Positions 21,630 to 46,965 of a stretch of 64,000 nt of DNA are shown here, one piece after another. Numbering within the stretch: position 1 is the stretch's first letter; the number at the start of each line of letters is the position of its first letter. A model generated the notes under the pieces. The model worked only from the letters and a program-made list of their open reading frames with translations, had not been told where the DNA came from and did no database searches. The position numbers and the translations under genes are program-made. This stretch comes from Cyanophora paradoxa CCMP329 (lineage: Eukaryota > Plantae > Glaucophyta), in assembly GCA_004431415.1 (NCBI GenBank), contig QPMI01000502.1, positions 124,001 through 188,000 of the forward strand. Reading direction: 5' to 3'.

Positions 21630-24600
21630 ATGCCGCCTGGCAGGAGACCGTCCAGCAACTCCCTCGAGCTGCTGGGAGCACATTTGGTAGAGCTCAACAA
21701 CTCCATAGCCACAGCGCGTCGGGAACATGACGCTGACGCACGGCTCCTCCAGGCATTCTCCCGCTCCGCCCGGCTCGTCGCACCGCCGATTCTTGCTGAC
21801 GCCGGCTGCTCCTGCAGAGAGCCATCACCGAGGAGGAGCAGCAGATAGCGCTTCTGCAGCGAGCGCTTTCTAATCCAAACGCCGCTGCGCACAGCGCGCT
21901 GCTTCGAACCCCCGCACACCATGAACGGCCCGGCACGCCAGGAACGGCCCGTTCGCTTGTGGAAGCGTCTCCGTCGGCGACACAACTGGAAGTGCTGATT
22001 GCACGCCTCACAGGAGGGTCCGCCACCGACCCTTTAGCGCTCGCTCGCCGTTTGCAACGACCGTAGCGCTCGCCGCCGTCCGCTCACCCGCTGTCGTCCT
22101 CGCCGTTAGGACCATCTCGCTGTCGTCTCCCGCAAAGATCCGATACGCCGGCGAAGTGTTCACGCGAGCGCGTGCGGCGAGCGGCGCGCCCGGCGATGTG
22201 ATGCAGTCGGAACAAGCGGAGCGGCTTCGGGGACGGCTCGAAACGCTCAACTCTGACTTGGAGCAGCTCCGCGCGGCGCACGAGCGGGAGGTGACGGAAC
22301 TGCTGGCGGTCCTCGGGGAGAAAAAGCAGTGCGCGGCGGACATGCGCCAGCAGCTCGCCGACGTGCTCAACCTCGACGTCGTCAACGCGACGCCGACGCG
22401 CCCGCCGCCCGGCTCCGCGCCGGCGGCCTCGCCGCACCCGTCCCCGTCGCCCTCGCCCTCGCCGACGGGGCGCGGCGAGGCGGCGGACATCGTGCTGAGG
22501 GCGGCGCTGGCGGACGCGGAGGCGGCGCGGCGGGAGGCGGCGGAGGCGAAGCGGGAGGCCGGGGAGCTGCGGGAGCGGCTGGCGGCGGCGGCCGAGGTGG
22601 GGCTCGGGGAGGCGCCGAACCGCGAGAAGGCGGAGAAGACGGCGCGGCAGATCCGCGGCTTCACCGAGGCCCTCGCCGAGAAGCAGCGCACCGTCAAGGA
22701 CCTCCAGGGCAAGGCGAGCCGGCCCCCGCCCCCTCCGTGCGCCCCGCCGCTCACCCCGCCCGCAGCTGGCAGCGGCGGAGGCGGAGCTGCAGGCGGCGCG
22801 GGCGGAGGCGGCGTCGGCGCGGCGGGCGATGCCGGAGGGGCGGCGGGGGCGGCGGCGGAGGCGGTGGAGCTACGCGCGCAGCTCGAGTCGGCGAGGGAGG
22901 AGGCCGCCATCGCCCGCGACGAGGCCGAGCAGAGCCACGTGCGCCCCGGCCCGCCCTCCACGCTCAGCCGTTATGGTCCGAGGCGCCGGCGCGGCCGCAG
23001 AGGGAGCGCGCTGCGCTGCAGGACACGGTCCAGCGGCTCGAGGACGAGCTGGCGCGCCCCGCCCCGCCTCCGCGCCCGCCCGCCGCGCTCTGATCCCCTC
23101 CGCAGTTCCGCGCGCGCGCGAGCCGCGGCGCCGGTGACGGGGCTCCCGTCGACGCGGACGCGGTGCGCGCGTGTCGGGGCGGGGGGGGGGCGCCGGGCTT
23201 GTCCGCGCCGGGCTGAGGCGGGCGCAGTTCGAGCGGATGGAGGAGGACCTGGTGGGGGCGAAGGCGGAGGCGGAGGCGCTGCGGCAGGAGCTGGACCGGA
23301 TCTCGGAGGAGGCCGGGGAGCGGGCGGCGCAGCTGGAGGCGGAGGTCGAGGCGGCGCGGGCCGAGATGGCCGCCCTACAGCGCCGCCTCGCCGAGGCCCA
23401 GGCCCGCGGCGAGACCGAGATGACCGCCGCCCGCGAGGCCCGCCCCCCCGCCCTCCTCTGCCTTCTGGACGCCTGACGCCGGCCCCGCAGACGATCCGCA
23501 TGGCGAAGGAGGCGGCCCAGAAGGCGGTCGCCAACGCGCAGCAGGCGGCCGAGGCGGCGCGCGGCGCGCTCGAGGCGCAGCTCGCCGCCGCCCGCGCCGA
23601 GCTCGAGGCGCTGCGGGGGGCGCAGGGCGCCGCCAGCTCGGTGCGTGGCGCGCCGGGGCCACGCGGGGCGGGGCCGACGCGCGCCCCAGGCCGAGGCGGA
23701 GCGGTGGCGGGGCGAGGTGGAGGCGGCTCGGGAGGAGGCGGCGCGGGCGGCGGCGCTGCTCGCCGACGTCTCCGCGCGGGCGCGACAGGCGCAGGAGGAG
23801 GCGGCGGCGGCCAAGCAGGAGGCGGCGGGGCGCGCGAGGAGGCGGAGCAGGCGCAGGAGGAGGAGCTGCGGTGGCGCGCGCAGGCCGACGCGGCGCGGCG
23901 CGAGGCGGCGGCGGCGCGCAAGGAGGCGGAGGAGGCGCAGCGGGAGGCCGAGGCGGCGCGCAAGGGCGAGCAGGAGGCGCGGGTCGAGGCGGCGCTCCGC
24001 AGCGCCGAGCTCGCCGCCAAGGCCGAAGGCAGCGCCGCCGCCGCCGCCCGCGAGGCCGAGGAGGCGCGCGCAGAGGCGGCCGCGGCGCGCGAGGCGCAGG
24101 CGGCCGCCGAGCAGCGGGCGGCGGAGGCGGAGGAGCGCGCGCGGGCGGCGGAGGAGGCGGCCGACCGCATTGCGGCGGAGGCGGCGGCGGAGGACGGGAG
24201 CGTGCGGACGTAGCGGCGGCGCGGGAGGCGCAGCGGGCGGCCGAGCAGCGGGCGGCGGAGGCGGAAGAGCGCGCGCGCGCAGCGGAGGAGGCGGCTGATC
24301 GGCTGGCGGCGGAGGCGGCCGCCGAGGACGACGAGCGGGCGGAGACGGCGGCAGCAGCGCGGGAGGCGCAGGCGGCGGCGGAGCGGCGGGCGAGAGAGGC
24401 GGAGGAGCGGGGGCGGGCAGTGGAGGCGGCTGCCTCCGAGGCGATCGCGGCGGCCGAGCGACGGGCCGCGGAAGCCGAGGAGCGCGCCCGGGCGGCCGAG
24501 CGGGAGGTGGACGAGTCGAAGGCGGTGGAGGCGGCGCGGGCGGAGGCGGCGGCGGCGCGGGAGGCGCAGGCGGCGGCCGAGCGGCGAGCGTCGGACGCGG

Positions 24601-27583
24601 AGCAGCGGGCGAGGGCGGCGGAGGAGGCGGCGGCGCGGGTGGCGATCCGGGCGCGCTCGGGGCGGCCGAACTCGCCGTCGACGCAGAGCGAGGCGTGCTC
24701 GACGCCGCGCTCGACGCGGGCGCGCTCCGAGGCGGCCGAGCTCGAGGCCGAGGCCGAGCGGCTCCGCGAGGAGGCCGAGCTCGCCCGCGACGAGCTCGAG
24801 CTGGCCCGCGCCGAGCTCGCCGCCGCGCGGGCCGAGGCCGAGGCGGCGCGCGGCGCGCTCGAGGCGGCCGAGGGCGCCGCGAAGAAGTGGATGGGGAGGC
24901 GATGGGCAGGGGGACCGCCTCGAGCAGGTGTCGGCGCGGGAGCGGGCCGCCCAGAAGGAGCTCGGCGCCGCCCGGCAGGAGGCCGAGGCGGCGCGCACCG
25001 AGGCCGCCGTGGCGCGCTCGCAGGCCGCGCACGCGGAGTCCCAGGGCCGCGCCGAGGCGGCCTGCGCCAAGGCCGAGGCCGAGACGGCGCGCGCCGACGC
25101 GCAGGCGGCGCGCGCCGACGCAGAGCGCGAGCGGCGGGCGCGCGAGGCGGCGGAGGCGGAGCTGGCGGCGGTGCGGGCGCGGCGGGAGCGGGAGGCGGCG
25201 GAGGCGGAGGAGGAGGAGGGCGGGGCGCGGGAGGCGCTGGCCGGCGAGCTCGCGTCGGCGGGGGAGGAGGTGGCGGAGCTGCGGGCGGCGCTGGAGGAGG
25301 CGCAGGCCGAGCTGCGGGCCGTGCGCGGGGCCGTGGAGGGCGCCGAGGGCCGCGCCGCCGCCGCCGAGGGCCGGCTCGAGGGCGCCTCGCGGGAGCTCGA
25401 GGGGCGCGCCGCGGAGGCCGCCGCCGTCTCCCGCGACCTCGCCGCCGCCCGCGGGCAGCTCGCCGCCGCCCTCGAGGAGGCCGAGGCGGCCGCCGCCGAG
25501 GCGGGGCGGGCCCGCGTCGAGGCCGCCGCCGCGCGGCGCGAGGCGGAGGCGGCGGCCGACGAGGCGGAGGCGGCGCGCCGGGAGGCGGCGGCGGTGCGCG
25601 CGCAGGCGTCGGCGGCGGAGAGGGCCCTCGGGAAGGCGGAGGCCGACGCGGCGGCGGCCCGGCGGGAGGCGGCGGCGGCGCGGGACGAGGCCGAGGCGGC
25701 CGCGAAGGAGGCGGGGGCGGCCCGGCGCGACATCGCCGCGGCGCGGGCCGACCACGCCGCCGCGCGCTCCGCGGAGGCCGAGGCGGTGCGGGAGCGGGCG
25801 GAGGCCGACGCGGCGGCGGCCCGGCGGGACACGGCGGCGGCGCGGGCGGAGGCGGAGCAGGGCGCGCGAGAGGCGGTGCGGGCGGCGGAGGCGGCGCGGG
25901 CGCGGGCGGAGGCGGAGGCGGCGGCGGCGCGGGAGGAGGCGGCGGCGCAGGTGGCGGCGGCGCGGGACGACGCGCGGGCGGCGCGGGCGGCGGCGGAGGC
26001 GGCACGGCGGGAGGCGCAGGCGGCGCGGGAGGCCGAGGACGCGGCGCGGCGGGCGGCGGCCAGCGCGCAGGCGGCGCGGCGCGGCCCGGGCGAGCTGCAG
26101 GCGGAGCTGGCGGGCGCGCGCGCGGCCGCCGAGGCGGAGGAGCGGCGGGCGGAGGCGGCGGAGGCGGCGCTGGCGGGGGCGCGGGCGGAGGCGGCGCGCC
26201 TCGCGGAGCGGCTTGCGGCGGCCGAGGCGGAGCTGGCGCGCCTCCGGGCCGCCCTCGCCCCCGCCGGCGGCGAGCCCGGCCGCGAGCGGCGGCGCCGGCG
26301 GGGGCGGGGAGGGCGACCGGGCGGCCCTGGAGTCGCTGGGCTTCGAGCTGGCGGCCGCCCGCCGCGAGGCCGCCTCCTCCGCGCGCCAGATCGAGGGCCC
26401 GCCGCGCCCCCCGCCGCCGCCCCCCGCGCGCCTCCTCGTCTGACGCCGCGCAGCCCTGCGGGAGGAGCTCGAGGGGGTGCGCCGCGAGGCCGCCCCGCGG
26501 GCGGCGCCGGCAGCCGGCCCGAGCGCCGCCGACGAGCTCGAGCTGCTGCGGGCCGAGGCCGACATGCTCCGCGCCGAGGCCCGCCCCTCGCGCCCCCGCC
26601 TCTCCCCGCGAGCTGACGGCGCGCAGCTGCGGGCGCTGCGGGCGGCGGGCCAGCGGCCGGCCCCGGTGCAGGTGCAGGCCTGGGCCGAAGCGCGGGGCGT
26701 CCCGCAGGCGGGCCGGGGCCCCAGCCCGACGCCTCCTCCCCGCTGGGCGGCACGCCCGGCTCCCGCGACGCGGTGCGCGCTCCGCTCCGCTCCGCTCCCC
26801 GTGCCGCCTGACGCGGGGCAGGGCCGCGTGGCGCCGCCCTCGACCCCCGTGGGGGACGCCGGCGGGGAGTTCCCGCGGCAGGGCCCCGCCCTCGTGCGCC
26901 TCCTCGCAGCTCGCGTCGCCGAGCTCGAGACGCAGGTTCGAAGCCCGCCCGGCCCCGTTCCCTCCTTCGGCGCTGACGCCGCGCAGCTGAAGAGCATCGC
27001 GCCGATCGCGCACGCGCCGCCGTCGCGCGAGCCGGCGGCCCGCGCGCACTCCATGCCCTCCCACAGGCCCGAGCCGCCCGGCCGCCGGCACCCGGACCCC
27101 AGCCGCGCGCGTCGGTCTCGTCGTCGGCGGCGGGCGCGCCGCCCGGGGAGGGCTCCGGCACGCCCGGGGCGCAGCGGGCGCGCTCGGCGGGAAGGCGGGG
27201 CGGCGCCCGGCGTGGACCTCGCCTCGGTCATCCGCGCCGCGCACCGCGCCTTCCACCGTGCCGGCGGCGGCGCCGCCGCCGCCTCCGCCGTCCTCCACTC
27301 GGGCGGCGCGCCGGCCGCCGGGCGCCGCCCGCGCAGCTCGACGCCCTCGACGCGGTGCTCGCGGGCGGGCCGTCGCCCGGGGGAGCCCCGGGTTCAGCCC
27401 GGCGGCGTCGACGAGCACGGCGGCGGGTCGGCGGCGCGGGGCTCGCTGCTGCGGGCGGCGCTGGCGGCGGAGGGCGGGCCGCCCACCGACCTCCGCGGCG
27501 TCTACCGCGAGGTCCGCGCCCTCGGCCTCCACCCCTCCCGCCCTCCCCGCCCCCGCCGCCCCGCCGCCCCCCTCCGGAGGTGA
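21630..27583 (+). CDS. Very long Ala/Glu/Arg-rich coiled-coil protein (multi-exon, apparent frameshifts)
   Basis: Kilobases of AEAEAARREA-type heptads; exons from MPPGRRPSSNSLELL through ERLRGRLETLNSDLEQL to LAARVAELETQ. Confidence 0.65.
24060..24640 (+). repeat. Coding tandem repeat (~110-120 bp unit, ~4-5 degenerate copies)
   Basis: AAAAREAQ(A/R)AAE(Q/R)RA(A/R)EAEERARAAEEAA recurs at ~24075, 24215, 24350 and 24545. Confidence 0.7.
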
Positions 27584-29953: not shown

Positions 29954-31573
29954 ATGGCGTTCGTCAACACCGTTCCCGTCTTCGCCTCGTCCTCGAAGGT
30001 TGCGGTCGATGCCCAGACCTGCTTCCTGAACAACAAGAACAGCCGCAAGGTCGGCGCGTTCGACGGCCTCCGCCGCGTTGCGGGCGCCAAGTTCGAGGCG
30101 GCTGCGGCCCCGGCCTCGTTCTCCGTCTCGGCCTCGGCTGAGCGGTGAGCCATTTGCGCGCAACCGCTTGGTCGGCTCGCCGGTGAACCTTGCGTGCTCA
30201 CTTTACATTTCTTCCGCAGTGAGACCGTTGCCCAGAAGGCGTCGACCTTCGGCCGCGCCCTGGCGGCGTTCGTCGCGGCGGCTGGCATCTCGTTCGCCGG
30301 CGTGTCCCAGGTGATTACCGGCTGGATGGGATGTAGAATAGCGTTTCATCATCAGCCAAAGCTCTCTGAGAACCGGAGCCTGTTGGCCGACGGCGCTGGA
30401 CGAAAAGATCCGGGATGATTGTTGGCCGCCTCTGGCGGCGGATACTCCTAGCGCCGCGCGCCGCCGTCCTCGTTAGCATTCGATGGATTGCTTTGGATGA
30501 TTAGAGTGATTTAGAGGGCCGTTGCTGGTCTTTGTGCGCCGTTCTGACCCGACTTCGCAGGCCAACGCTGAGGGCCTCACCTACGACCAGCTCAACTCGG
30601 CCAACTACCTGAAGCTGAAGGGCACTGGCATCTCCAACACCTGCCCCACCCTCTCCACCTCGGCCCGCGGCAACATCTCCCTCGAGCGCGGCAAGCAGTA
30701 CTACGTCACCGACCTGTGCCTCCAGCCCACCGACATCTCCGTCCAGGCTGAGTCGCTCCAGCGCGTGCGTTCCTTCTTAACAGACCTCAGGCGCCCGGGC
30801 GGTCACTCACGCGCGAGCGCAGGGCAAGGGCGAGGAGTTCCAGCCCACCCGCCTTGTGACCCGCTCCACCTACACCATCGACAAGGTTGAGGGCCCGCTC
30901 TCCGTCGAGGGCGACTCGATCACCTTCGTCGAGAAGGACGGCTTCGACTACCAGGTTCGCCTCGCCGCTTGCGCGTTGGCGCCTTCTCGGCTTATCGTGC
31001 GGTCGCGCGCGCAGGCTCTGACCGTCAAGCTCCCCGGTGGCGAGCTCGTCCCGATGCTCTTCACCGTTAAGGCAAGCGCTCGCGCTCGCTGCAGCCGCGG
31101 CGTCCGTGGCTGACCGGTACCGCCGAGCAGGAGCTCGTGGCCAAGGCCCCGGTCAGCGACGGCGGCATCTCCCCGGCCACCAACCTGAAGGGCACCTTCG
31201 CCGTTCCCTCGTACCGCATGGGCAACTTCCTCGACCCGAAGGGCCGTGGTCTGGCCACCGGCTACGACTTCGCGCACGCGCTCCCGGCCGCGGACCAGGA
31301 GGAGCTCGCCAAGGAGAACGACAAGCAGAACATCACCCGCGAGGGCAACATCTCCCTCCAGGTCGTTCGCGTCGACGGCTCCACCGGTCCGCCCCCGCCC
31401 CGAGCGCTCCCCTTGTTCTTGTTCCTTTCTCACCCTCCTTTACAGGCGAGATCGCTGGCGTCTGGGAGTCGGAGCAGCCCTCGGATGACGACCTCGGCTC
31501 GAAGCAGCCCAAGCCCGTCAAGCTCTCCGGCGTGTGGTACGCCCGCGTCAACGACGGCAACCCCAACCTGTAA
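29954..31573 (+). CDS. psbO: Photosystem II oxygen-evolving enhancer protein 1 with bipartite transit peptide
   Basis: [10 protein letters not shown].. transit peptide, thylakoid signal ending [48 protein letters not shown]|[45 protein letters not shown]. Confidence 0.97.
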
Positions 31574-32233: not shown

Positions 32234-33971
32234 CTACTCGGCGAAGAGGGCCTCGACGAAGGCGTCGGGATCGAAGGCCTGCGGGCCCCCCGCGCCTCAG
32301 AGCGCGCCCCGGGGCCGGGGGGGCGGGCGGGGGCGGGCCTGGAGGTCCTCCATGCGCTCGCCGACGCCGATGAACTTGACGGGGATGCCCGTCTGCTGCA
32401 CCACCGAGACCACCACCCCGCCCTTGGCCGTCCCGTCCAGCTGCCCCAGCCCCGCCCCCGCTCAGCGCCCCGCGGCGCCCCCGGCGGGCGGGCCCCGGGG
32501 GGCGGGGCGCGCCTTGGTGACGATGATGCCCGTGGAGCCGGCGACCTCCTTGAACTCCTTCGCCTGGCTCAGCGCGTTCTGCCCCGCCGGCGTCAGCCGG
32601 CCCCGGCCCCGGCCGCGCGCTGGGCCGGGGGCGGGCGGCCTGCCTGGCCCGTCGTCCCGTCGATGACCATGAGGACCTCGTGGGGCGCCCCCTGCCGCAG
32701 CCGCCCGGTCCTCAGCGGTCCCGCCCGCCGCGGGGCGCGGGGCGCGGGGGCGCACGGGGATCTTCATGGCGAGGGTCTGCTTCATCTTGGAGAGCTCCTC
32801 CATGAGCTCGAAGTTGGTGTGCAGGCGCCCCGCCGTGTCCGCGATGAGGACGTCGTACGTGCCGTCCGCCAGCGCCTTCTCGACGGCCGCGAAGAGGACC
32901 TGGGCCGGCTTCTTCGCCGAGGGGATGGCGACGATGTCGGCGCCCACGCGCCCCGCCCACACTTCGAGCTGCTCGTCCGCTGCCGCGCGGAACGTGTCCC
33001 CCGCCGCGAGCAGCACCTGCGAGCAGGCTCAGCCCCCCGGCACGGCGCTGGAGCGTCCAGGGCCCGCTCGGCCACGGCCGCGCGCGCCTTCTTGCCCTCG
33101 CTGACGAACTTGTGCGCGAGCTTGCCGATCGTGGTCGTCTTGCCGGCGCCGTTCACGCCCACGACCATGATCACCGCCGGCTTCTTGTCCGTCGGCAGGT
33201 TCAGCTCCGTCTTGCCGCCTGCTTACGCGCGCGCGCCGCTCAGTCTGCCAGTCGGCAGGCCTCGCGCGCGTACGCAAGGCGGACCCTTCTCCTTCAGGAT
33301 CTTCGCGAGGCTCCCCTTGATGCTCAGCTTGATGTCCGCGCCCTTCAGGATCTTCTTCCCAGACTCCGCGCGCAGGTCGTCCATGATCGCCAGCGTCGTC
33401 CGCAGGCCGAGGTCGCTCGTGACGAGCACCTCCTGCGGGCGGACGGGTCAGCGCCCCCGCCGCATGCGCGCAGACCGGCTGCTGTTCATAGCTATGTGGC
33501 AGCGGGAGTGTATACGCCGGCGAGGCGGCGCCCGCCACGCGGCACGCGCGTGCGCACCTCGATTTCGTCCAGGGTGTTCGTGCCCTCGTCGTACTTGCCC
33601 ATGTTCCGGTCGATGACGTCCTCGATGCGCGTCATCATGTTTGAGCGCGTCTTGGAGAGCCCCTGCAGCCACACTCGTCGGCTCGCACGCGCGCAGCTAG
33701 AAAATCCACGGACCTCGACGAGCCGCCCGAAGAATCCGCCGCGCTGCTCCTCCTGCTGCATCTCCGCTAGGATCGAAGGGCAGAAGGATGCCGCGCGCGC
33801 CGTCCGCTCAGCGGGAGCGGGGCGGAAAGTGCGCCCGCTGAAGAACTGCCGCCGCTCGGCTTGCGGGAGGGCCCGCCGCTCCCCCGCGGCTGAGCTCTCT
33901 GCCTGGGGCTGGCCATTCGGCTGAACCGGAGCCCGGCCGGGCACGCACAGCGGGGCGAGGAAGGCCTGCAT
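32234..33971 (-). CDS. ftsY: Plastid SRP receptor GTPase FtsY
   Basis: Transit peptide MQAFLAP..; [77 protein letters not shown]. Confidence 0.95.
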
Positions 33972-34081: not shown

Positions 34082-35337
34082 ATGGCTACGGGCTTCGGTA
34101 ATCTTCGGGCTTTCTTTGAGCGCTTGAGCAGCGGCGGCGGCGGCAGCGGAAGCGGCGGCTCGCGCCCGCCACCGAAGAAGAGCGACGAGAAGGTTGCGCC
34201 AGGGCGCTCCGTTGTGGTCTCGGGCGGCGGTCTCGAGGAGATGCTCGACGACGGCCTGCTCCGTATGATTCTGAAGCTGATTTTCAAGCGTTTAGAGGCA
34301 CGCGCTTGCCCTCCTCGAGCCCCGCAGTATTGCGCTCAGGCTTGCTTCAGCCCAAGGACGTCAAGGACGTCGGCCGCCTCGTGCGCGTCAACCGCCACTT
34401 CAACGAGCTCCTCAGCGAGCCGCGCTTTTGGGAGGAGGTGCGGGAGCAGGCCTGTTCACCCATGCAGCCCCCTCTAATTCTGTGTCAAACCTGTGAGCAG
34501 CTCATCAACGAGCGGTTCCCTGAAACCTCTCCCGAATTAATCAGCGCGTATGGAGACAATATGAGAAATTTGTACCTGTCGCTTGGTGCGTGTTGCTGTA
34601 TGCGCTGTACATGCAAGAGCTTCCTGACTCGCGGTTGCTCTGCAGCCCTTCCGCGAGTGCACTTCGCTGCCCGCGATGACATGCAGGTCACGTGGCTAGA
34701 TGGTAATTACTTAAGGCGCATCGAGGACGTCGACCTGGACCACGAGGTTGTAAAGCTCCAATCCGGTGCTCCCCCGTGCTTTCCGTCCAACCTTCTGTCT
34801 CTGACCTAGCCCCTCAGTTTGCTGGCTCGAGCTGAAGGGCGAGATGCGGAAAGTGCTGCGGTGACTTCCGATGGCCTTGAATTTTGCTCACTGCGGATTG
34901 CTCACTGCGCGGCGCAGCGGCTCGTACCGCGCGAGCTGGCGGCTCAAGGTCGAGAAGCGGGCCGTCCTCGACGTCGTCACGTTCGCCGTGGACCTGCCGA
35001 GCGGAGCCGGGACGGGGTGGGCCCCTCGACTCTCCTCGGCGATCGCCGCGTCTCCCCTCATCAGTGCCACTTGCAGGGCGATGCGGCGGTGGGGCGAGGG
35101 CGAGTACGGCCAAGTGGGGGGCACGGGCTGGTTCGATCTGGTGGTGGGGACCGTACGCGTGGACGCGCCGAGCACAACGCTGCAGTACTCGCTCAAGGCG
35201 GTCGAGCAGATGTGGTGCGTGCTGACCCCGCCCGGCGGCCGCCAACGCGCCGGCCACACTCGCTGATCGCTGCATTGCGTTGCAGGTGGAAGTCTGGCAT
35301 AAGCTTTGACTGCTTCCGCCTGGAGCCCTGCGCCTAG
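34082..35337 (+). CDS. F-box protein with C-terminal PP2 (phloem protein 2)-like lectin domain
   Basis: F-box-like LDDGLLRMILKLIFKRLE|PKDV..LVRVNRHFNELLSEPRFW; PP2-like ARDDMQVTW..Y, VVKLQS|VCWLELKG, YRASWRLK, GWFDLVVG, WKSGISFDCFRLEP. Confidence 0.7.
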
Positions 35338-35577
35338 CGATATCATTGCCAACCTGTGCAGCCCTGCCCACATGTACAGAGCGCAGAATTCAAGGGAACG
35401 CTGTAATGGTTCAATAACAGATGAAGCCTATTCGACCACGCAATTATGAGAGAGGACAGGAAGGTTGGGAGGGGGGGACCTAGCTGAAAATGAAAAAACC
35501 CGTGCCATGAAATAGGACTGTTACACGCTGGGGCGCCGGGGGGCGCCCAGTTCGAGGAAAGAGGGAAAGGAGCGGTG

Positions 35578-38240
35578 TCACCAGAAGCTCTGGCTGTGCC
35601 TGAGGTACCAGAAGGCGTCCTTCTTCTCCGCCGGCACCGCCTGGACCTCGACCAGCCGCCCGTTCTGCCGCGCCCCGACGCTCGGCGCCGCCCCCGGCGC
35701 CGGCGGGCGGGGGCGGGCCGGGGGGGCAGACCTTGTACACTTTCCTGTAGACGATCTCCTCGGCCTTGGAGCGCCGCTTCGAGGGCCGCGCCGCCGCCCG
35801 CTTCCGCTTCACCGGCGCCGGCGCCTCCTCCTCCTCCTCTTCGTCGTCCGCCCAGGCGTCTGCGGGGACCGCCGCCGTCAGCGGCGCCGCGGCCGCCAGC
35901 GCGGGGCGGGCCGCCGCACCACGGATGTCGTCGTCGTCGTCCGCTGCGGCGCGGCGGCGAGGCGGGGTGGCGGTGACCTGCGGGGGCCCAGGGGCGTGAG
36001 CTGGGCGGGGCGGCGGGGGCGGGCGGCGGGGGCGGCGGGGGCGCACGACCTCGTCGTCGAAGCCGTCGAGGTTGATGTCGCTCGCGTCGATCTCCAGGTC
36101 CTCGTCCAGCTGCCGCGCCGTCAGCGCAGCGCAGCGCGGGCGGCGGGCGGCCGCGGCGCACCGCCTTCGGGGCCTGCCGCGGCCGGCCGCGCGGCTTCGG
36201 CTCCTTGGGCTCCTTCCGCTTGGGGGAGGCGGCGGGGGACGGGGAGAGCCGCGCGGCGGAGGCGGCCTCGCGCGGGCGCGGCGAGGGCGCCGGCTTCTCC
36301 TCCTCCTCGTCCTTGTACAGGCTCCCGAAGAGGCCCTTGAGCTGCGGCTCCCGCGCCCTGCTCTGGCTGGCCCCGGCGCCGCCCAGGCTCCCGCTCCCGT
36401 TCCCGTTGTCGCCGGTGCGGACAGCGACGCCGCTGCCGCGGAGGGAGCCGCGCCCGTCCTCGCTGCCGCTGCCGCTCTCGTAGCGGCGGTTGGTGAGGTC
36501 GGCCGTGCCGCCGAGCGAGGTCACACCGGCCTCGCGCGCGAGGGAGCGCCGCGTGAGGAGGAAGCCGCCCGAGGCGGACGAGGAGGAGCGGCGGTCCCGC
36601 GTGCGGGCGCCGACGACTGCCGTCCCCCGCTCCACCGCCTCGTCCGGGTCCATCCCGTGTATCGCCGCCGACCTCCGCAGCAGCGTCTCCCGGATCTTCG
36701 CCTTGTGCGCCTCGCTCAGCTTCCTGCCCCCGCGTGCCTCAGCCGCCGCACCACGGGGCGGGGCCGGCGGGACGCCGCACCGGCCGATGCCCTTGCCCGC
36801 CATGCCCGCGGCGTGCTTGGCGCGGTACTCGGGGTCCTGCCACCGAGCCCGGATCGATTCCTGCCACGCGCCTTAGATTGGGGGCGGACCGCGGTGGGGC
36901 GGCGCGCTTGAACCCGAAGCTTAGCCCTTGTCTCCTCGGACATGTGCGTTGCCCCGCGGCGGGAGGCCGTCGGCGGGGCGTTGCTGGCGAGGCGCCGCTC
37001 GAGCGCGATGACGCGGTCGGCGTCCAGGGGGCGCGGGTAGCTGCCGTAGACCCCCGAGCAGCAGGACGGGGGCACCAGGAGCGGCATTGCGGACTGCAGC
37101 CCCGCCGCGAACGCGAGCTCTCCCGCCTCCTGTATCTCCCTCACGAGGTGCCGGCGCGCCTCCATCTCCCGCTGCCGCACCTCCTCCCGCTCCTCCCGCA
37201 GCCGCGCCCGCTCCTCGGGGAACCCGTACCTTCCGAGGCAAGGGTCAGAGGCCATGCCCGATCCGCGCCGAGCCGCGACAGACCTCTTTACTCGCGCGGC
37301 CACTATCTTCGCCTGCACATCGGGGTCATGCAAGCGCTCCTTTATCTTCTCTTTCGTCTCCGGCTTGTGCTTCTTCCCTAGCTGGTTCTGACGCATCTTC
37401 GCGATCATCTGCTCGATGTAAGAGGACTCCGCAGAAGCGGCAACACGCCACGCACGCCGGGCTTCTGCATGGCCGCACGAGTCGCCTCCGCGATCTTCCT
37501 CTTGGTCTCCTCGCTGTGCTTCCTTCCTTTATTCCACGGCGTCTTGCCCTATCGCGGTACACAGCGTTCAGGATTGCGCGGCAAGGGAAGAAGGAAGACG
37601 GAGGAACCTTGTTGGCAGCGGAGATCTTCGCCTTGCTTTCGTCCGTGTGAGGGAAGCCATTGTTTACAGTTCGAGGCCTTCCCGAAACTGGCCAGAGAGA
37701 ACGGTCGGCGGAAAGATCAGAGGCGCTGTCAGGCTCTGCAGACGCCGGGGCACCGCATAGGACGCATAGAATCACTGTTAGCCGATGCAAGTAGACAGCA
37801 ACGGCAGCTATGCGCAGGAAGCCGGAGGGAACGAACGATCAAGATCGGCAGCGCTCTCAAGGATGTTGAGATACTCGTCGCCGAAGTCCGTGCGGGCAAG
37901 GCGCGGGGCAAGAGAAGGTGTAATCGTGATTGGGCGCTGCGTATGAACTGAGTGCTGGGCAGGCGAAGGGCGCGCGACCCGCGCATCACACCTGCACTTC
38001 TGAGGCGACGATAGCGAAGACGTCGAACGGACGAGGGCTCTCATAGCTGAAAGAGAAAGTTTTCCTCCTTTGCACCCTGTCCTGATGTGCGTCTGACGAC
38101 GTCCTTGCCCACGGCGATCGGCGCAGGAGGGATGATCGCTGGCCGCAGAAGCCGCTGAACTGGACGCCGACAGGCCCCGGTCGCAAGAGTGGCGCAGCTG
38201 TGAATGCTTGGAGCGCATCGGATCCCTGGGCGGGAGACAT
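35578..38240 (-). CDS. Putative plastid-targeted NUMOD3-repeat nucleic-acid-binding protein with AT-hook-like motif
   Basis: GFPHTDESKAKISAAN, PWNKGRKHSEETKRKI, GKKHKPETKEKI, HMSEETRAKL, RKLSEAHKAKI; KPRGRPR; transit-like N-terminus MSPAQGSDALQAFTAAP. Confidence 0.75.
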
Positions 38241-38373
38241 CGGTCTGTGCGGAGCGCCGGCCAGATATTCCGAACTGCAGGTCGGCGAGAACCTCCGATG
38301 CGCCTCAGCAATTCCTCCACTACTCGGCGCTGCTCGCGGCGCCGCGCCCGTGCGCTCAGCTACGCAGCAGCGG
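38107..38373. repeat. ~267-bp direct repeat, copy 1 (5' region and first exon of the NUMOD3 gene)
   Basis: Aligns base by base with 43465-43731, roughly 90% identical by eye. Confidence 0.95.
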
Positions 38374-38568
38374 CCGCTCCGAGGGGTACAGTCGCGGGCT
38401 TTCGTAGGGGTACAAGCGTCCGGCTGAGCTCGCGTCCGGCTTCCCGCTGTAGACTTTAGCATCTCGTTAGATTAGTACGAATCGTAGGCGATCGGCCCGG
38501 GGGCTTCGAGTCACGCGACGCGCGGTTGCCTGGCCCTTTGGCCGAGTCATTCATCCTTTTGGCGTGCG

Positions 38569-41500
38569 ATGGACGGGTTGAATATGCTCGCTGCATCTCC
38601 CGATCCAAGCGCCACCGCAGCAGGCGCCCGAGTCGCTTGCGCTCAGCCCTCGACCAGCGCTAGCGCGGGCTTCCCTGCACCCGCATCCGCGACTGCGCCG
38701 ACGGGCTCCCCTCTTCCTGTCGCGGCTCCGGCAGCCACGCCCGAAGTCCCGAAAGAAAGCGAGTACGAGCGCCTGTGGAAACAAGTGACTGGAAATCCGG
38801 CGGAGTTTCAGACCTGGACAAACCTCATCCAGATCACAGAACGTGAGGTTTGCGGAACCCCCTGCAACCCCTTCGTCACGCGCTGAGCGCCGCCTCCACA
38901 CGCCCCCCGTACGCAGCAAGACAACACGGAGAAGTTGAGAAAGGTGTATGATGCGTTTCTGAACGAATACCCGCTCTGCTATGGCTACTGGAAGAAGTAT
39001 GCGGACTTAGAGCTCAAGAAGGGCTTTCCCGATCGCACGCGCGACGTGTACGAGCGCGGCGTCGCTGGCATTCCTCATTCCGTTGATCTCTGGACGCACT
39101 ATTGCACGTTCGTCCTTGAGCGCGGCGACCCAGAGGATGCCGTTCGCAAGTGCGTTCCGTTCGCGGCCATCGCCCCCTGCGCGACCTCCGCAGTTCCTTT
39201 TCCCCCTCCTTTGCTTGCAGTCTATAGATGGCGCTTTACATTAGATCGTCAGCTTCTTTCTTGCCACAACTGTGCACCTCTGCTGTTCTTTTCTTCCGTC
39301 CGTACCTTCGCGCATGGCGCCGTGCACATTATCGCCACCGCCTCTCTTCAGTTTGTCGCTTTTCCCGGCTTTGGAGTCCCTCCGTGCACTTCACGCGGCT
39401 GTCGCCCGTGTACTCCGCGTGCGCCTTCTCTCCCCGCACCGACGCCGTGCGCCCCGCAGCCTTTTCGAGCGCGGGGCGAAGCAAGTGGGGACGGACTACC
39501 TCGGCCACCTGTTCTGGGACAAGTACCTGGAGTTCGAGATCGGACGGGAACGCTACCCCCACGCAGGCCCGTCGCCCCTCCCGGCCCCGGCCCCCGCCCG
39601 GCCCCCTCCCCCCGCCGCTCCCCTCTGATCGCTGCCCCGCAGCCTCGATCTACTACCGCGTCCTGCAGATCCCCCTCGCGCAGCTGGATCGCTACTGGGA
39701 GCGGTGAGAGCTCGTTTGCGGGGCCGAGGGGGCGGGGGCGGGGCGGCGAGCGGGCGGGGGCGCAGGTTCCAGGTGTTCGCGCAGACGCGGGCGACGTGGG
39801 AGCTGCTGACGGCGGAGGAGGAGCTGGCGTTCCAGCCGCCGCAGGCGGGCGAGGAGGCCGGCCTCGAGGACGGGGAGGCCCTCCCCACGGGCGACGCCCT
39901 CGAGGCCGAGAAGCGCGAGCGGCTGATGCAGGCGCGCGAGATGATGTACCGCGCCGCCGCCGAGGAGCGCGCCCGCCGCCTCCCCTTCGAGCAGGCCGTG
40001 CGCGCCCCGTCCCGGCGCGCCCAGCCACCCGCGCCGACGCTGCGCGCCCCCGCGGCGCAGATCAAGCGACCGTACTTCCACTTTAAGGCGCTGGACGACG
40101 CGCAGCTGACGAACTGGCGGAAGTGAGCGTGCCCCGCGCGCCCCGGGGCCCGAGCGCCGAGGCGGGCCGCGCGGCAGGTACCTCGACTTCGAGGAGAAGG
40201 AGGAGGACTTTGCGCGCGCGCGGAAGCTCTACGAGCGCTGCATCATCCCCTGCGTGCGCCCCGCCTCGGCCCTGCCCTCGACACGGCGCCCCTTGAGCGA
40301 AGCCGGGCAGGCGAACTACCCGGAGTTCTGGCACCGGTACGGGGAGTGGCTGGACGCGGCGGGCGAGCGGAAGGAGGCGCTGGAGGTGTACAGGAGGGCG
40401 GCCACCGTCTTCCTCCGCCGCCGCCCCGAGATGCTCCTCACGTACGCGGCCGAGGCCGAGGCCCGGGGCGAGCCGCAGCGGGCGCGGGAGACGTACGAGC
40501 GGCTGGGCGGCGCGGTGGCGCCGGGGCTCGTGGAGGGCGCGCTGCGGTGGGCGAGCTTCGAGCGGCGGCAGGGGCGCACGGCGGAGGCGGCGGCCGTGTA
40601 CGAGGCGGCCCTCGAGCGGGTCATGGGCGAGCCCCGCGCGCACCTCTTCCTCGCCTCCCACGCCGCCCGCTTCTTCCTCCGCGTCCGCCCCGTCCCGCCC
40701 ATTCGCCGCGCCGCGCGGCCCTCGGCCCGAGCCCCGTGCCTCGCGTCGCAGCACCTCAAGGACGTGGAGCGGGCGCGGGGCGCGCTGGAGTGCGCGCTGG
40801 TGCGGGCGCCCGAGATGCGCGCCGGCTGGGATGCCCTCGTCGAGCTCGAGTCGGCCCTGCTCCCAGGCGCGCCCCGCCGCAGCCGCAGCCGCGCCGGCCT
40901 CGGCCTCGCCGCCTGACGCCCCCTCGCCGCAGCGCCGGAGGCGGAGCGGCAAGTGCGCTCCGTCTACGAACGCGCCGTGGCGCCCGAGTCGAGCCTCTCT
41001 CCCGTGCGCCGCCCGCCCCCGGCCGCTCGCCCCCGGCGCGGGAGCGAAGGGGCCCCCGGGCGGGCGCAGGAGGACAAGCTGGACATGTGGCACCGGTATC
41101 TCGAGTTCCTCCACGACTCCGCCGCCTCCATCGCCACGTGCCGCCCCGCGGCCCCCGGCCCCCGCCCCCCGTCCCGCCCCCCCACGCCCCGCCCCCGGCA
41201 GCGTCCACAAGGCGACGGCGGCCTTCAAGAAAGCGCGAGGGGGTGCGCGGGGGAGCGCGGGACGGGAAGCCGCTGGGCAGGCCTCACGTGCCGCCCCGCA
41301 GACCTCGTAGAGCGGCGGAACGCGGAGCTGAGCCGCAAGCGCGCCCTCGACGCCCCCGCCGACGCCGACGAGGTGCGCGCATGGGCGCCCGCGGTGCCCG
41401 CCCGCCCCGCCGCCCTCACACGCCGCCCCGCAGCGCGCGAAGCTCGCGAGGGCGGCGGTGCCGGCGGCAGGGGCCCCGACGGGGGCAGCCCTGCCGGTCC

Positions 41501-41863
41501 TCGTCGGACCACCGCCGCCCTGCCTACCGGTGCGGGCCCGCAGAGCCGCGCGCGCCGCGTGCGCCGCTGACGGCACCGGCGTCGCAGGGGCGGCAGCGCC
41601 GGTGGCCGCCGTGGCCCCGACTGTCGGGAAGCAGCCAGTCCTCACAGCGGCGGCGGTGCAGGCCGCCGCCGTCGCCGCCGCCGCCAACATACGGTCCGGG
41701 CGCCTTTCCCCGCTTTTTGCGCCAGCCTCGTGACGGGCAGCGCGCTGGCAGGCCCGGGGCGGCAGTGCCGCCGGCGAGCGCCCCCTACGGGGCGCCGGCG
41801 GGGACGCAGTACGCGCAGTACGCTCAGCCGGCGACCGCGTCGCCCCAGTACACGTACAGATAG
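38569..41863 (+). CDS. PRP39: Pre-mRNA processing factor 39 (U1 snRNP HAT-repeat protein)
   Basis: [106 protein letters not shown]. Confidence 0.92.
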
Positions 41864-42029
41864 TTAGAGATGCAGAGGGGAGCCCCCTAGGAATAGTAAT
41901 TAAAGAGAGGAGAGGGCAGAAGCTGGCAGGGCGGAGGCTGTGCGTGGACGCCGAGCGCTCTTCGAGACGGCGCGCCCGGCCACAAGGGCGCCAGGGAGCT
42001 CGAGCGGGGCGGGGCGGGGAGGGCGGGCC

Positions 42030-43598
42030 CTAGAGGATGGCGTCGGGGGCCTTGACGCCGGTGATCTTGCGGGCGCGGACCTGCGGCGGGGGCGGGTCAG
42101 CGGGGCCGAGGGGGGTCGAGGGCGGGGTGGGCGCGCGCACCTCGGCCTCCCGAAGGTACTCGGCCATCGCCTGCGCCCGCCGTGGGCGCGGCGCGGCGCG
42201 GCGGGGGCGGCGGGGGCGGGGCGGGGCACCTGCTGGGAGGCGGAGCCGGCCGGCAGGTTGAGGACCGTCGCCTCGAACTTCTTCTCCTGCGGGCGGCGGC
42301 ACGGGGGGCCGGCTTGGCGGGGCGGGGCGAAGCGGGGGGGCGGGGGCACGGGCGGGCGCGCACGACAGCCATGAAGAAGGCGTCCGGGGAGCAGCGGGGC
42401 GCCTTCCCCGTGAGGCCCTCCCGCAGCAGCTCGTCCCACTGCCGCTCGTCCGCTGCCGCCCCCGCCGCGTCGCACGGGGCCGGCGGGCGGGGGCGCGGGG
42501 CGGGGGGTCGGACCGCGGAGGACGTGGTCGAGGAAGGCGGCCTCGGGGGAGAGGAGGGCGGCGCGGGCGTCGGACTCGTCCCCCGCCAGCGAGACCGAGA
42601 TGACGGCCTGCAGGACGCGCTGCAGGATCTCGATCATGTCCTGCATCGCGTCCTTGCTCGCCTTCTGGATCCACGCCCTGCGCTGTCGCGTCGGCGCCGG
42701 CCGGGGCGGGGCGCGCGGGGCGGGCGCGTGTGGCGCGCATGAGGGTCAGGACGAGGGCCTCGTCGAGGTCCGCCCGCCGCGACGCGACCCGCTGCCCCCG
42801 GCTGCCTCAGGGCCCCGCCCGCGGAGAGCGGCGCGGGGCGGGGCGGGGCGCGCCTGGCGGAGGCGAGCGACGCTTTCGTCCGAGAGGGGGAGGACGAACG
42901 AGCCGTCGCCCTCGGCCGCCGAAGCGAGGAAGTCCTGCAAGGTCGAGCGGCTCCGCTTCACTGCCGCCACGCGATTGAGCGGCACCGAAACAGAGAGATT
43001 GACGGCCCACGGGTCGCACTCTCTTCTTGTGCCACTTTGCTGAGGGTCTCCACAATGTTCAACACGCTGCTCGACATTGCCGCTAGCTAACAACCGGTGA
43101 GGAGCGACGGCGGCGCGATAGCATGCGCGACGCGGACCTCTGCGCGCCCCTCCTCGTCAGCCTGCGAAGCAATCTCTGCCACCCGAAGAAAGAAGGCCCG
43201 GTCGTACTTCGCTACTCGGGTGCGGGCGAAGGGGATGAGAACCATCGCAACTATAGCCGGCACATACTCGCACCAAGATCCTGGCTGACTGCGTTCTCCA
43301 GCTCGACCTTGCTCTTTCCACGCAAGTCTTCAATGAGCTTGTCAAGCGCAGGGTTGCTCGCAGGCTGCTGTGCAGCCGAGGCGACCGCTGGGCAAACCCA
43401 GCTCGACGACCGATGGCGTACTGCAGTGAAGCGCCTCGATTGCTGCCGATCCAACGGCGTCTTCGCCCACGGCGACCGGCGCAGGAGGGATGATCGCTGG
43501 GCACAGAAGCCGCTGAACTGGACGCCGACAGGCCCCGGACGCAAGAGTGGCGCAGCTGTGAACGCTTGGAGCGCATCGGATCCCTGGGCGGGAGCCAT
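42030..43598 (-). CDS. Uncharacterised helical protein, probably plastid-targeted
   Basis: Transit-like N-terminus MAPAQGSDALQAFTAAP; exons LDKLIEDLRGK, YDRAFFLRVAEI, AWIQKASKDAMQDMIEILQRVLQ, EKKFEATVLNLPAGS, AMAEYLREAE. Confidence 0.65.
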
Positions 43599-43731
43599 CG
43601 GTCTGTGCGGAGCGCCGGCCAGATATTCCGAACTGCAGATCGGCGAGAGCCTCCGATACGCCTCAGCACTGCCTCCGCTACTCGAAGCTGCTCGCGGCGT
43701 CGCGCTCGTGCGCTTAGCTACGCAGCAGCGG
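43465..43731. repeat. ~267-bp direct repeat, copy 2
   Basis: Same sequence as 38107-38373. Confidence 0.95.
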
Positions 43732-44634
43732 CGCTCCAGCTCGAGGGGTCCCCCCCGTACGGTTGGGGTACAGGTACAGCTTGCGGAAGCGGAGCTAGTA
43801 CGAGCTACGTACCCCAAGTGCCAAGTACCCCAACAAAGCGCCGGCGCCGTCCGCGTAGGCGTAGCCACTGTGGGGCCTCGAACGATCGATCGCGAATCGA
43901 TTTCGATCGCGATGGCGAGCGACACGATCGCGACTCGCGAGTCTCGAAATTTTTGAAATCGATGTTGTTTTTTCTTTTGTTTTTTCTTTATTTTTTGGGT
44001 CTTTTTTAAAACCCTCTTCGAGCGCTCCAAATTGAAGTGACCAGTGACCACACTCCCGAAAAAATGTTTACGTCGTCGACGAAGCCTCACGAAGGGCCGC
44101 GCGATCGACTTCGCGGGCCACAGCGGCCAGTCATCATGAGTGATGTGGGTTTTTTTGCCCGCCGGCGGTCGATCCGGCGGGGCCGCCGATCCAAATTTAA
44201 GCCTGTACCCCACTCATCTTCTTGCGGACATCGACATGCACGCGTACGCGTTCGGAATCTTCGGATAGCTGCGCATGCGGTTCCGGTGCAGCGTCGTCGG
44301 AAGCGCGTCCGAGGTTCTGCATCTATCTCAAACGACTAGACTAGTCTTAGGCGGTGCTAGCGCAGCGGGCGCATGCGCATGCAGGGCGTCGGCACGACTA
44401 CAGATCTAGATCACGCATCATTCGGCCTTTTCGCGATTCGCGCGGCGGTCACCGGCTGCCGGCTGCAGCGGGCGCCGTGCAATATTTAGCGGCGCTGAGC
44501 AGCAGCCGCATTTTATGCGGCAGTTCGCGGCCGCTGGTGGCGTCGCCGTGCGCGCGGAGCACGGCCCGTGAACGCCGACGTCGGCTCTGGCAGGCCGAGC
44601 AGTCGGGCTGCGCATCAGCAGGGGCACTCCAGCA

Positions 44635-46965
44635 TGATGCGCGCTCCCTGGACGCCGTACGGCGCGGCCCGCGGGCCCTTCTCAGCGTTGCCTGAACCAA
44701 CCGACGCGAGGGCGGAGAAGTTGCGCCTGCTCCACGAGCTGCAGCGCCGGCACGCGGAAGTCGCGGCCCGCGCTCGCGCGCTGCCCCTACCAAAGATTCA
44801 GCCGCCGTCAAGCGCGGTGGACGCGAGGGTCGGTCGCCGGCCGCGCTGCGAGCCGCGACCCGTGTGCGCTCACTGGCCGACGGCGCAGGCGGTGGTGGCC
44901 GACGAGGACGGGAGCCTCCTCATGCAGTTCGAGTTCGAGACGCTGTTCTCCGACCCGGCGCGCGCCGCCCGCGTCTGCGCAGACGAGATGCACGCCCCCG
45001 CGAGCCCCCCGCCTCCCCGTCCCCCCGCGACCCTCACCCCGCGCGCAGGCACCTTTGGAACCCCGCCTTCCGGCCGCCGGGCCCCCACCTGGACCTTGGA
45101 AGCAAGCCGGGGCTCGAGCTCACCAGCCGCGCGCGGGCGGCCCGGTGCGGCTCCCAGCCCTCGCGCCCCCCCTCCCGCCTCCCGTGGCGACCTGGGCGCA
45201 GGGTACTGGCTATTCTGGAGGCGGAGCTGGACACGGTCGAGAGCGTCGCGGTATCCCCCGACGGCTCCTCCGCCTCCATGTTCCTCGCCTCCACCCGGTA
45301 CCCCCGGCGCCGCCCCCCCCCCCCCCCCCCCCCCCCCCCCCGCCCCCCGCCCCCTCTTTGACAGCGCACGAAACCAGCCTCTGCATCCGCGTGCCATGGC
45401 TAGCGTGCGCCGTCCCCCCTCCTGTCCCGCCCAAGGACCGCCCTCCGGGGTCCGACGGGCGGGGGCGGGCAGGCGGGTGCCGGGCCTGAGGCGGCTGCAA
45501 GTGGCGTACGAGGACAGGAACCAGTGCCTCTGCCTGCACGTCTTCGAGCGCGCCCCCGCCGGCCGCCTCCGCGTCGTCATCACCGACGTCTGGCCCCACG
45601 CCGAGCGGGGCGCCCCCGTCGGGGCCGCCCCCTCGGGCTTCGCGCGCCACGTCGCCGGCGAGTACGCGCGCTACGCCGGGCTGCTCCACGCGTACCTCGA
45701 CGGGCTAGCCCGCGCCGGGGGCGCCGGGGCGGCGGGGGCGCCCCGAGGCGCTCGGGCTCGGGCTCGACGGCCTCGCCGCCGCCGCCCATGGTCCCTGCCT
45801 CGCCGCCCCTCGCCAGCCCCGCCCCCTCCGACGACTCCTCGCCCCGCTCCCCGGCCCGCCGCCCCTCCCTCTCCGACGAGGTCGCCGAGGTGCGCCCCCG
45901 CCGCGCCGGCCCCGCCCCGCCGGCGCCGCGGGGAGCTGAGGGGCGGGCGGGGGCAGCGGCTGGCGGGACTCGCGGTGGAGCCCGACGTGCCCGGCATCCT
46001 CGCCACCGCCCCTCCTACTTCCGCGACCGCCGCCCCGCCGCCGCCCTCCACGCCCCCTGCCCCGCCCCGCCACCGGCCCCGCCCGCGCGCCCTCCCCCGA
46101 CTCGGGCGTCGGCCTCTCGCTCGACGCCCTCTCCCCCTGGACGCCCTCGCCCTCTGGACCTTCGCCGAAGCCCCGCCCCGCCCCTCCCTTCCTCCGCCCC
46201 CGCCCGCCCCCGCCGCAGCCCGTCGCCCGGCCGAGGGCGGCCTCGAGCGCGGCCGGGATCGGCCGGCCGTCTGCCGCGCTCTTCCCTCGCGGCGAGCCGG
46301 CGGGCGGGGGCGCGGCGGGGGCGACGCCGGCGCACCTCCAGCGGGCGCCCGCCATCCGGCGGCCGAGCGCGGCGCTGCTGCCGCGGGGGACGGCCCCTCG
46401 GAGCCGGCCCCGCTGCCGGCCGCCTTCGGCCTCGTCGGGGTCGGCCACACGAGCCTCCCCGTGCACCCCGCCGGCCCCCCTCCCCTCGGCCCTCCACGAC
46501 CGCCGCAAGCGCCGCGCCATGTCCGCCGCCGCTGTCCCCGGCGAGCCCTCGGCCCCGCCCCGCTGCCGGCGGCGCGGCCGCTCCCCATGCCGACGGCGGG
46601 GCCCGGGGCGCCCCTCACGAGCGCCATCCTGCGCTCGCTCGCCGCCGGCCCGGGCCCGCCCCACGACTCGCTGCGGCCCGCCGGGGCCCCACCTACGCCG
46701 TCGACGAGGCCGCGCCCTCCCGCCTCCTCCCCCCTTTCGCGGCCCCGGCCTCGGCGCCCCTCCCGGCGGCCCCGCCGGCCTCGCGCCGCCCCCCTTCCCG
46801 CGGGCGGTGTCACCGGGCACGCTGCCGCCCCTCGCGTCGCTCCTCGGCGGCCTGCCCGGCCTCACCCGCGCCCCGGTCGCCCCCAGTCCCGGGAGCTACT
46901 CCTCCCCCGCGCCCCTCGTCCCCATGGGCGGTCCCCTGGGTCCCGCCCCTTGGCCCCAGGGCTGA
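44635..46965 (+). CDS. Hypothetical multi-exon protein with Pro/Ser-rich C-terminus
   Basis: MMRAPWTPY..EKLRLLHELQRRH, LLMQFEFETLFSD, RLQVAYEDRNQCLCLHVFE..VVITDVWP; short introns. Confidence 0.45.

Follow-up and report, generated by a model that had tools for sequence, protein, structure and literature searches.

A duplicated block of leader and N-terminal codons heads two unrelated neighbouring genes in Cyanophora paradoxa and may encode a plastid transit peptide

The acquisition of organelle-targeting signals by nuclear genes is a central question of endosymbiosis, and the documented cases are mostly old and eroded. The locus described here, in a 64-kb stretch of Cyanophora paradoxa DNA (the window, in which all positions are counted), raises the question for two unrelated neighbours: do they share a gene head, and perhaps a plastid address, by copying? 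We propose that one nuclear gene supplied a block of ~280 bp, made up of its 5′ leader, perhaps with some core-promoter sequence, and its first 48–51 codons, and that a copy of this block came to head another, unrelated gene 5.36 kb away on the same strand. Both genes would now initiate at the ATG within this block, or cassette, yielding the same N-terminal 45–50 residues, and the shared peptide would most likely act as a stroma-targeting (muroplast) transit peptide. We give this reading as a whole a probability of roughly 0.6; its inferred elements are the targeting role, any promoter sequence in the block, and which gene was the donor.

The duplicated block is a direct repeat of 279 nt that joins positions 38096–38374 to 43454–43732 with 93% identity (20 differences) and a spacing of 5358 nt. 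An earlier note on this DNA was thus right about the existence of the repeat and its spacing of 5.4 kb, and its length of ~267 bp fell short. Each copy lies on the minus strand and consists of 134 nt of upstream leader (38241–38374 in copy A, 43599–43732 in copy B) and the opening 48 codons of gene A or gene B, with 134 nt before and 145 nt after each ATG, much as that note had outlined (~135 nt and 45 codons). The leader is the more diverged part, also as described before, at 11/134 nt (8.2%) versus 7 differences in the first 135 coding nucleotides (5.2%), and it contains no ATG. The edges are abrupt, and the 300 nt outside either edge align no better than shuffled sequence. A repeat search found no other non-low-complexity repeat of ≥100 nt in the window, and no third copy was detected there by sensitive blastn and tblastn. 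An assembly duplication is ruled out by the 20 differences between the copies and by their unique flanks. Rfam and tRNA scans of the repeat found nothing. Two candidate features of the leader were rejected: a structured RNA element, as folding is less stable than in shuffles (z of +1.4 to +1.6), and an apparently invariant stretch of 43 nt, which is not significant (longest-gap test, P = 0.55).

Public gene models for Cyanophora paradoxa contig tig00020911 (EukProt EP00741) were built with BRAKER1 using RNA-seq, and their annotators describe the models as in need of manual curation (PMC6704402). Both models considered here map exactly onto the window, with introns of 47–149 nt bounded by GT/GC-AG, and both start at the cassette ATG; positions 38240 and 43598, named earlier from the DNA, are exactly the starts used by g15748 and g15751. 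Gene A (tig00020911_g15748; coding region 35581–38240, minus strand) has 12 exons and three isoforms, t1–t3, of 646–662 aa, all of which include exon 1. Its model g15748 is a 648-aa NUMOD3-repeat protein (Pfam PF07460, 74.1 bits against a gathering cut-off of 20.4) in which the repeats begin at about residue 118, after the cassette peptide. Exon 1 runs from 38240 to 37992, to codon 83, and is followed by an intron of 55 nt (37991–37937) with GT-AG ends, exon and intron both as predicted by the public gene model; exact-protein look-ups returned no transcript contig. Nothing useful on NUMOD3 proteins of plants or plastids came from searches of the literature. Gene B (tig00020911_g15751.t1; coding region 42030–43598, minus strand, 3′ end approximate) encodes 320 aa, of which residues 1–294, down to 42227, are mapped exactly. 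The product is an all-helical orphan with no Pfam family, and its single-sequence AlphaFold2 model (pLDDT 46) was too poor for a structure search. Exon 1 of gene B extends from 43598 to 43422, to codon 59, and the helical domain begins at about residue 65, after the cassette peptide; intron 1 is 54 nt long, so the frame holds whether it is spliced or not. Between the two copies lies a gene for a PRP39-type splicing factor with HAT repeats (38569–41863, plus strand), whose ATG is 328 nt from that of gene A, placing cassette copy A within a short divergent intergenic region.

The cassette peptide stands at the extreme N-terminus of both models, before the NUMOD3 repeats in one and the helical domain in the other. 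The two proteins align over residues 1–55 only (E = 1e-28; E ≥ 0.4 for the remainder), which bears out the earlier description of the genes as non-homologous, and 43 of the 45 shared residues are identical, the figure given before. When 1.84 billion protein representatives were searched exhaustively with the 48-residue peptide, just the gene A and gene B proteins matched. Word searches on the mature parts recovered no relatives beyond the Cyanophora proteins, which leaves no orthologues by which to tell donor from recipient. Among Atlas entries, the closest look-alikes of the two mature proteins belong to green algal and plant families, a lead only. All of these searches used public proteins and single exons or ORFs.

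Is the shared peptide a plastid address? In glaucophytes, import into the plastid requires a Phe near the N-terminus. The peptide (S7, A6, P5, G5, L5 and R5 in 48 residues, with one Asp and no Glu) is Ser/Ala-rich, net positive and poor in acidic residues, resembling in its Ser/Ala/Arg-rich, acid-poor composition the stroma-targeting transit peptides of Cyanophora (PMC4510345; PMC2222254). The earlier note had singled out this Ser/Arg/Ala richness and a QAF motif like that of ftsY, and both are present, the motif within a QAFTAAPLL core. The two comparison genes in the window are also as described: the ftsY N-terminus (MQAF) begins at 33971 on the minus strand, with SRP-GTPase motifs downstream, and psbO starts at 29954 on the plus strand, with its mature EGLTYDQL at 30570. 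The AF-x3-P core (AFTAAP) is like the validated Cyanophora transit-peptide start MAFTLAPVAA (PMC4510345), and the ~50–65 residues that precede the mature domain of gene B match the length of canonical Cyanophora transit peptides (Koehler et al. 2015; Wunder et al. 2007, PMC2222254). In contrast to the canonical peptides, with Phe at positions 3–5, the cassette has its first Phe at residue 13, since an additional segment, MSPAQGSDAL, comes before it. This lies outside the first 10 residues, where Phe is found in 49/77 TAILS-defined Cyanophora transit peptides, usually at 3–5 (PMC4510345), and inside positions 1–18, where it is found in 145/187 cyanelle proteins (Koehler et al. 2015, PMC4510345). 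With a transit-like composition and an AFTAAP core but Phe at 13, a plastid-targeting role for the peptide is plausible, if unproven.

The same departure from the usual form could mean that the peptide is a true N-terminal signal with a different target (mitochondria, the envelope or two compartments) and not a canonical stroma-targeting one. A ten-residue segment with an Asp precedes Phe 13, unlike the usual MAF start, and a NUMOD3 DNA-binding protein could act on the genome of either organelle. The published muroplast N-terminome yielded no tryptic or N-terminal peptide of either protein: six peptide strings from genes A and B are absent from three supplement files of Koehler et al. 2015, a type of data in which low-abundance proteins are often missed. 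The one match to a five-letter string in those supplements is an Arabidopsis protein. Against a mitochondrial role, Pro and Gly make up 10 of the 48 residues and disfavour an amphipathic helix; the AF-x3-P core fits the plastid consensus, and most cyanelle proteins carry Phe within positions 1–18 (Koehler et al.). We consider another destination unlikely, though it is one of the two alternatives that deserve most weight.

The other is that the block is a 5′ leader or regulatory element only, its reading frame being incidental, and that at least one of the genes starts downstream, gene A for instance at ATG 38044 or 38216 in the +1 frame. This frame of gene A is open for 170 codons (37808–38320); from an ATG just 3′ of the cassette (38042–38044, minus strand), where it reads MRALVRSTSSLSS..., it passes through the annotated intron 1 and, if those 55 nt are retained, joins the frame of exon 2. 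The annotators' own call for manual curation could be cited in the same direction, as could the GC3 of the cassette ORF (0.71–0.75), which is far below the 0.93–1.0 of the 3′ exons; GC3 proved uninformative as a coding test, however, with the 5′ exons of gene A, gene B and PRP39 equally low. Gene B speaks against a downstream start, since the cassette ATG is the sole ATG upstream of and in frame with its helical domain, into which the cassette frame continues. Scanning would meet a well-placed upstream AUG first, and intron 1 of gene A is of typical length and bounded by GT-AG. The substitutions themselves also favour the annotated frame. Seven fall within the 45 codons, five synonymous, every one of these at a third position, and two replacements; the mostly synonymous pattern reported earlier thus stands, with the count of 4/6 revised to 5/7. 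The corresponding dN/dS is 0.14, the probability of two or fewer amino acid changes from seven random substitutions is 0.024, and the same substitutions read in the other two frames give 6 and 5 amino acid changes, against 2 in frame 0. The peptide frame has been under purifying selection since copying, a signal that consists of seven substitutions. A role as leader only is about as improbable as another destination.

Gene A may nevertheless once have started, or may sometimes start, at ATG 38042–38044. On a more elaborate account, which we regard as slightly less probable than either of the foregoing, the start of gene A was once ATG 38044, which opened a mitochondrion-like presequence (MRALVRSTSSLSS...); the neighbour's plastid leader and transit peptide were then added in front, in a different frame, and the 55-nt intron now restores the frame. 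Splicing together with use of ATG 38240 could yield a plastid form, and intron retention or an internal transcription start a second, otherwise targeted form. If true, this would be a datable case of retargeting or dual targeting with donor, recipient and frame-rescuing intron all visible.

For the copying event that we favour, the breakpoints are informative. The 3′ edge of the repeat falls at codon 48–51, partway through the first exon of each gene, and the 5′ edge lies in upstream DNA, a placement that indicates segmental copying rather than intron-mediated exon shuffling; the mechanism would be a local segmental copy or ectopic recombination. The earlier proposal that a neighbouring gene had captured an exon holds in that a gene-head block was copied and is shared by non-homologous genes, and "exon" does not apply, as no intron lies at either edge. 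We lean slightly towards gene B as donor and gene A, which retains what may be an earlier start codon, as recipient. The age of the event would be misjudged if the duplication were old and its copies had been homogenised by recurrent gene conversion, so that the 7% divergence understates the age and "recent" is wrong. Such exchange would be favoured by a distance of 5.4 kb on one strand, and the central 135 nt hold 3 differences against 17 in the outer 144 nt (Fisher P = 0.002, with boundaries chosen post hoc). However, the differences are not significantly clustered by the unbiased longest-gap test (P = 0.55), and selection on the leader and the N-terminal part of the peptide explains such a pattern as well. 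We find recurrent conversion doubtful, and more so than the alternative starts and destinations above.

Least probable is that the block derives from a dispersed repeat or transposable element, pieces of which ended up by chance at the heads of both genes. In favour are its small size and sharp edges, and its DNA copy count covers 64 kb of a 100-Mb genome. Against this, the window holds only two copies, both in the same orientation and the same placement relative to the gene start, with the frame conserved and with no terminal inverted or direct repeats or poly-A tail seen at the edges, and the peptide occurs in just two library proteins although genes span 60% of the genome (PMC6704402), which makes a high-copy element often taken into gene models unlikely.

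Nucleotide homology that is confined to the N-terminal part of genes whose mature products are unrelated is the pattern by which the sharing of a targeting signal is recognised, and it is the pattern found here. Known examples come from rice and Populus: Kadowaki et al. are said to have described in 1996 rice nuclear rps11 copies that carry atpB and coxVb presequences, and in Populus rpl32 is fused to the transit peptide of Cu/Zn-SOD. As in those systems, the Cyanophora pair has non-homologous mature proteins and a targeting sequence, here a candidate one, whose copies are homologous as DNA and arose by duplication within the nuclear genome. It differs in that the copy also brings at least 134 nt of upstream leader, that both genes are ordinary nuclear genes rather than recent organelle-to-nucleus transfers, that the partners are 5.4 kb apart, and that the host is a glaucophyte; in the literature searched we found no published glaucophyte case of presequence acquisition by duplication. 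The movement of an N-terminal targeting module between unrelated genes also recalls the exon shuffling of targeting peptides, for which PMC7456531 cites Long et al. 1996 (cytochrome c1 presequence) and Vibranovski et al. 2006. Classical exon shuffling joins modules at introns, whereas the cassette edges coincide with none. The cassette is a young example of a known route by which proteins gain or swap an organelle address, and involves no new mechanism. Its value lies in a young block (~7% divergence) with exact breakpoints, in partners that are close neighbours, and in a leader copied along with the coding part, which together provide a concrete locus at which to ask whether targeting and expression signals travel together.

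A repeat search of the window revealed a 279-nt direct repeat on the minus strand whose two copies head different genes. Copy A (38096-38374) opens tig00020911_g15748 (gene A, a NUMOD3-repeat protein) and copy B (43454-43732) opens tig00020911_g15751 (gene B, a helical protein); they are 93% identical and their starts lie 5358 nt apart. Outside a low-complexity coding array this pair is the sole repeat of at least 100 nt in the window, and sensitive blastn and tblastn searches found no third copy across its whole length. On the minus strand, each copy comprises a leader of 134 nt before an ATG (38240 in A, 43598 in B) and 145 nt beyond it. The 300 nt on each side align no better than shuffled sequence, showing that the block is sharply bounded. 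Elsewhere, degenerate repeats with a 21-nt period form a long array at 22400-26300 that is very rich in GC (as much as 85%) and is presumably coding sequence of low complexity, and 45297-45345 contains about 30 successive C residues within a plus-strand open reading frame, which would encode poly-proline or may be a homopolymer sequencing hazard.

In word searches, the copy B open frame led to a single EukProt protein, tig00020911_g15751.t1 (320 aa), and a NUMOD3 frame lying 3′ of copy A led to tig00020911_g15748.t2 (648 aa); by cluster look-up both belong to Cyanophora paradoxa (EP00741), with three isoforms for g15748. Both map exactly to the minus strand (g15748 at full length, g15751 over residues 1-294), interrupted by introns of 47-149 nt with GT-AG or GC-AG borders, and both public models begin at the repeat-borne ATGs, a start common to all three gene A isoforms. 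Exon 1 of gene A (38240-37992, minus strand, 83 codons) is followed by a 55-nt intron, and that of gene B (43598-43422, minus strand, 59 codons) by a 54-nt intron. The models were produced by BRAKER1 trained on RNA-seq, and their authors caution that manual curation is needed (PMC6704402). Against Pfam, gene A scored 74 bits for the NUMOD3 motif; gene B matched no family, and a poor single-sequence model predicts an all-helical protein. The two proteins can be aligned over residues 1-55 (E 1e-28) and nowhere else. Thus the earlier note was correct in describing a direct repeat at the head of two otherwise non-homologous genes, and in its choice of start codons. The nearest ESM-Atlas clusters are green algal/plant NUMOD3 proteins for gene A (score 0.85) and green algal/plant hypothetical-protein families for gene B (0.92); these are no more than leads, though in keeping with plant-lineage organelle proteins. 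Between the two genes lies a plus-strand PRP39-type splicing-factor gene, its ATG 328 nt from that of gene A.

Four points favour translation of the cassette frame. Upstream of the helical domain of gene B, the cassette supplies the sole in-frame ATG, and as intron 1 is a multiple of three the frame holds whether spliced or unspliced. The leader contains no upstream ATG. The seven differences in the first 45 codons comprise five synonymous third-position changes and two replacements (dS 0.148, dN 0.021, ratio 0.14), and when seven substitutions were placed at random, only 2.4% of simulations changed at most two amino acids; read in the two remaining frames, the differences alter 6 and 5 amino acids. 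The signal of selection is real, though drawn from a small number of sites. Third-position GC was uninformative as a coding test: the cassette frame has 0.71-0.75 versus 0.93-1.0 in 3′ exons, and in g15748, g15751 and PRP39 the remaining 5′ exons are equally low (about 0.6-0.75, against 0.93-1.0 in the 3′ exons of these genes). This strong 5′-to-3′ climb within genes is seen at 35000-44300 (minus) and 38569-38850 (plus); psbO exon 1 already stands at 0.91.

Gene A offers an alternative. Its +1 frame is open for 170 codons, has ATGs at 38216 and 38044, and runs through annotated intron 1 into the frame of exon 2; were that intron unspliced, translation would start from one of these ATGs instead. 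The reading frame from 38044, directly behind the cassette (38044-37936, minus strand; MRALVRSTSSLSSPQK...), looks like a presequence, and this ATG may be an older or alternative gene A start.

The putative function of the cassette peptide is most likely plastid targeting. Its composition (S7 A6 P5 G5 L5 R5, a single acidic residue) is in keeping with transit peptides generally. Koehler et al. 2015 (PMC4510345) determined Cyanophora cyanelle N-termini and found Phe among the first 10 residues of 49/77 transit peptides and at positions 1-18 in 145/187 nucleus-encoded cyanelle proteins, typical starts being the PsbO precursor N-terminus and MAFTLAPVAA. The window itself encodes two canonical Phe-type transit peptides: that of the psbO precursor (29954, plus strand; mature EGLTYDQL at 30570), matching a TAILS-verified entry of that study, and that of ftsY (33971, minus strand; GAGKTT at 33144, DTAGRL at 32836), starting MQAF. 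The cassette peptide aligns with the ftsY N-terminus, and its QAFTAAPLL is a good match to the Cyanophora core. In contrast to those peptides, its Phe is at residue 13, behind an extra MSPAQGSDAL, and since the stretch from the cassette ATG to the Phe has neither a further AUG nor a near-cognate codon in frame, this extension cannot be dismissed. The Koehler 2015 supplements contained none of six peptide strings drawn from genes A and B, which is weak negative evidence.

The copied upstream part may be 5′ UTR only. Its predicted RNA folding is no stronger than that of shuffled sequences, and a 43-nt difference-free stretch just upstream of the ATG did not reach significance in an unbiased test. 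In the divergent intergenic region of about 1 kb upstream of copy B, at a distance of some 250 nt from it, an A-rich tract (43950-44080, sense on the minus strand, GC 0.31-0.42) stands out against the 68% GC genome as a possible promoter or nucleosome-free element.

An exhaustive HMMER search of 1.84 billion representatives with the 48-residue cassette peptide found exactly two proteins, those of genes A and B. As about 60% of the Cyanophora paradoxa genome lies within genes (PMC6704402), a high-copy element with this sequence would be expected in more gene models. Assembly duplication is ruled out by 20 differing sites (11 upstream of the ATG, 9 downstream) and the unique flanks.

The earlier note's word 'exon' does not fit the copied piece: neither block edge falls at an intron, so the event was a local copy of a short segment or an ectopic recombination and not classical exon shuffling. 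Gene B relies entirely on the cassette ATG, with its block ending about 10-15 codons before the helical domain. Gene A has 65 more residues between block and first NUMOD3 repeat, retains the ATG at 38044 directly behind the block, and needs its 55-nt intron to join the cassette frame to that of exon 2. Such an arrangement would be expected if the block had landed in gene A ahead of an earlier start codon, a direction that the sequence favours only slightly over its reverse and that we hold weakly, as chance alone would keep the +1 frame open in about one case in three.

The observation of the earlier note is thus confirmed and its interpretation supported in part. Rice rps11 and Populus rpl32 are known cases in which a gene gained a targeting signal. 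Duplication and shuffling are well-documented routes to such a gain (Long et al. 1996; Vibranovski et al. 2006; both as cited in PMC7456531), and the Cyanophora locus would add a new example that is unusually young, comes from a glaucophyte and has carried its leader along.
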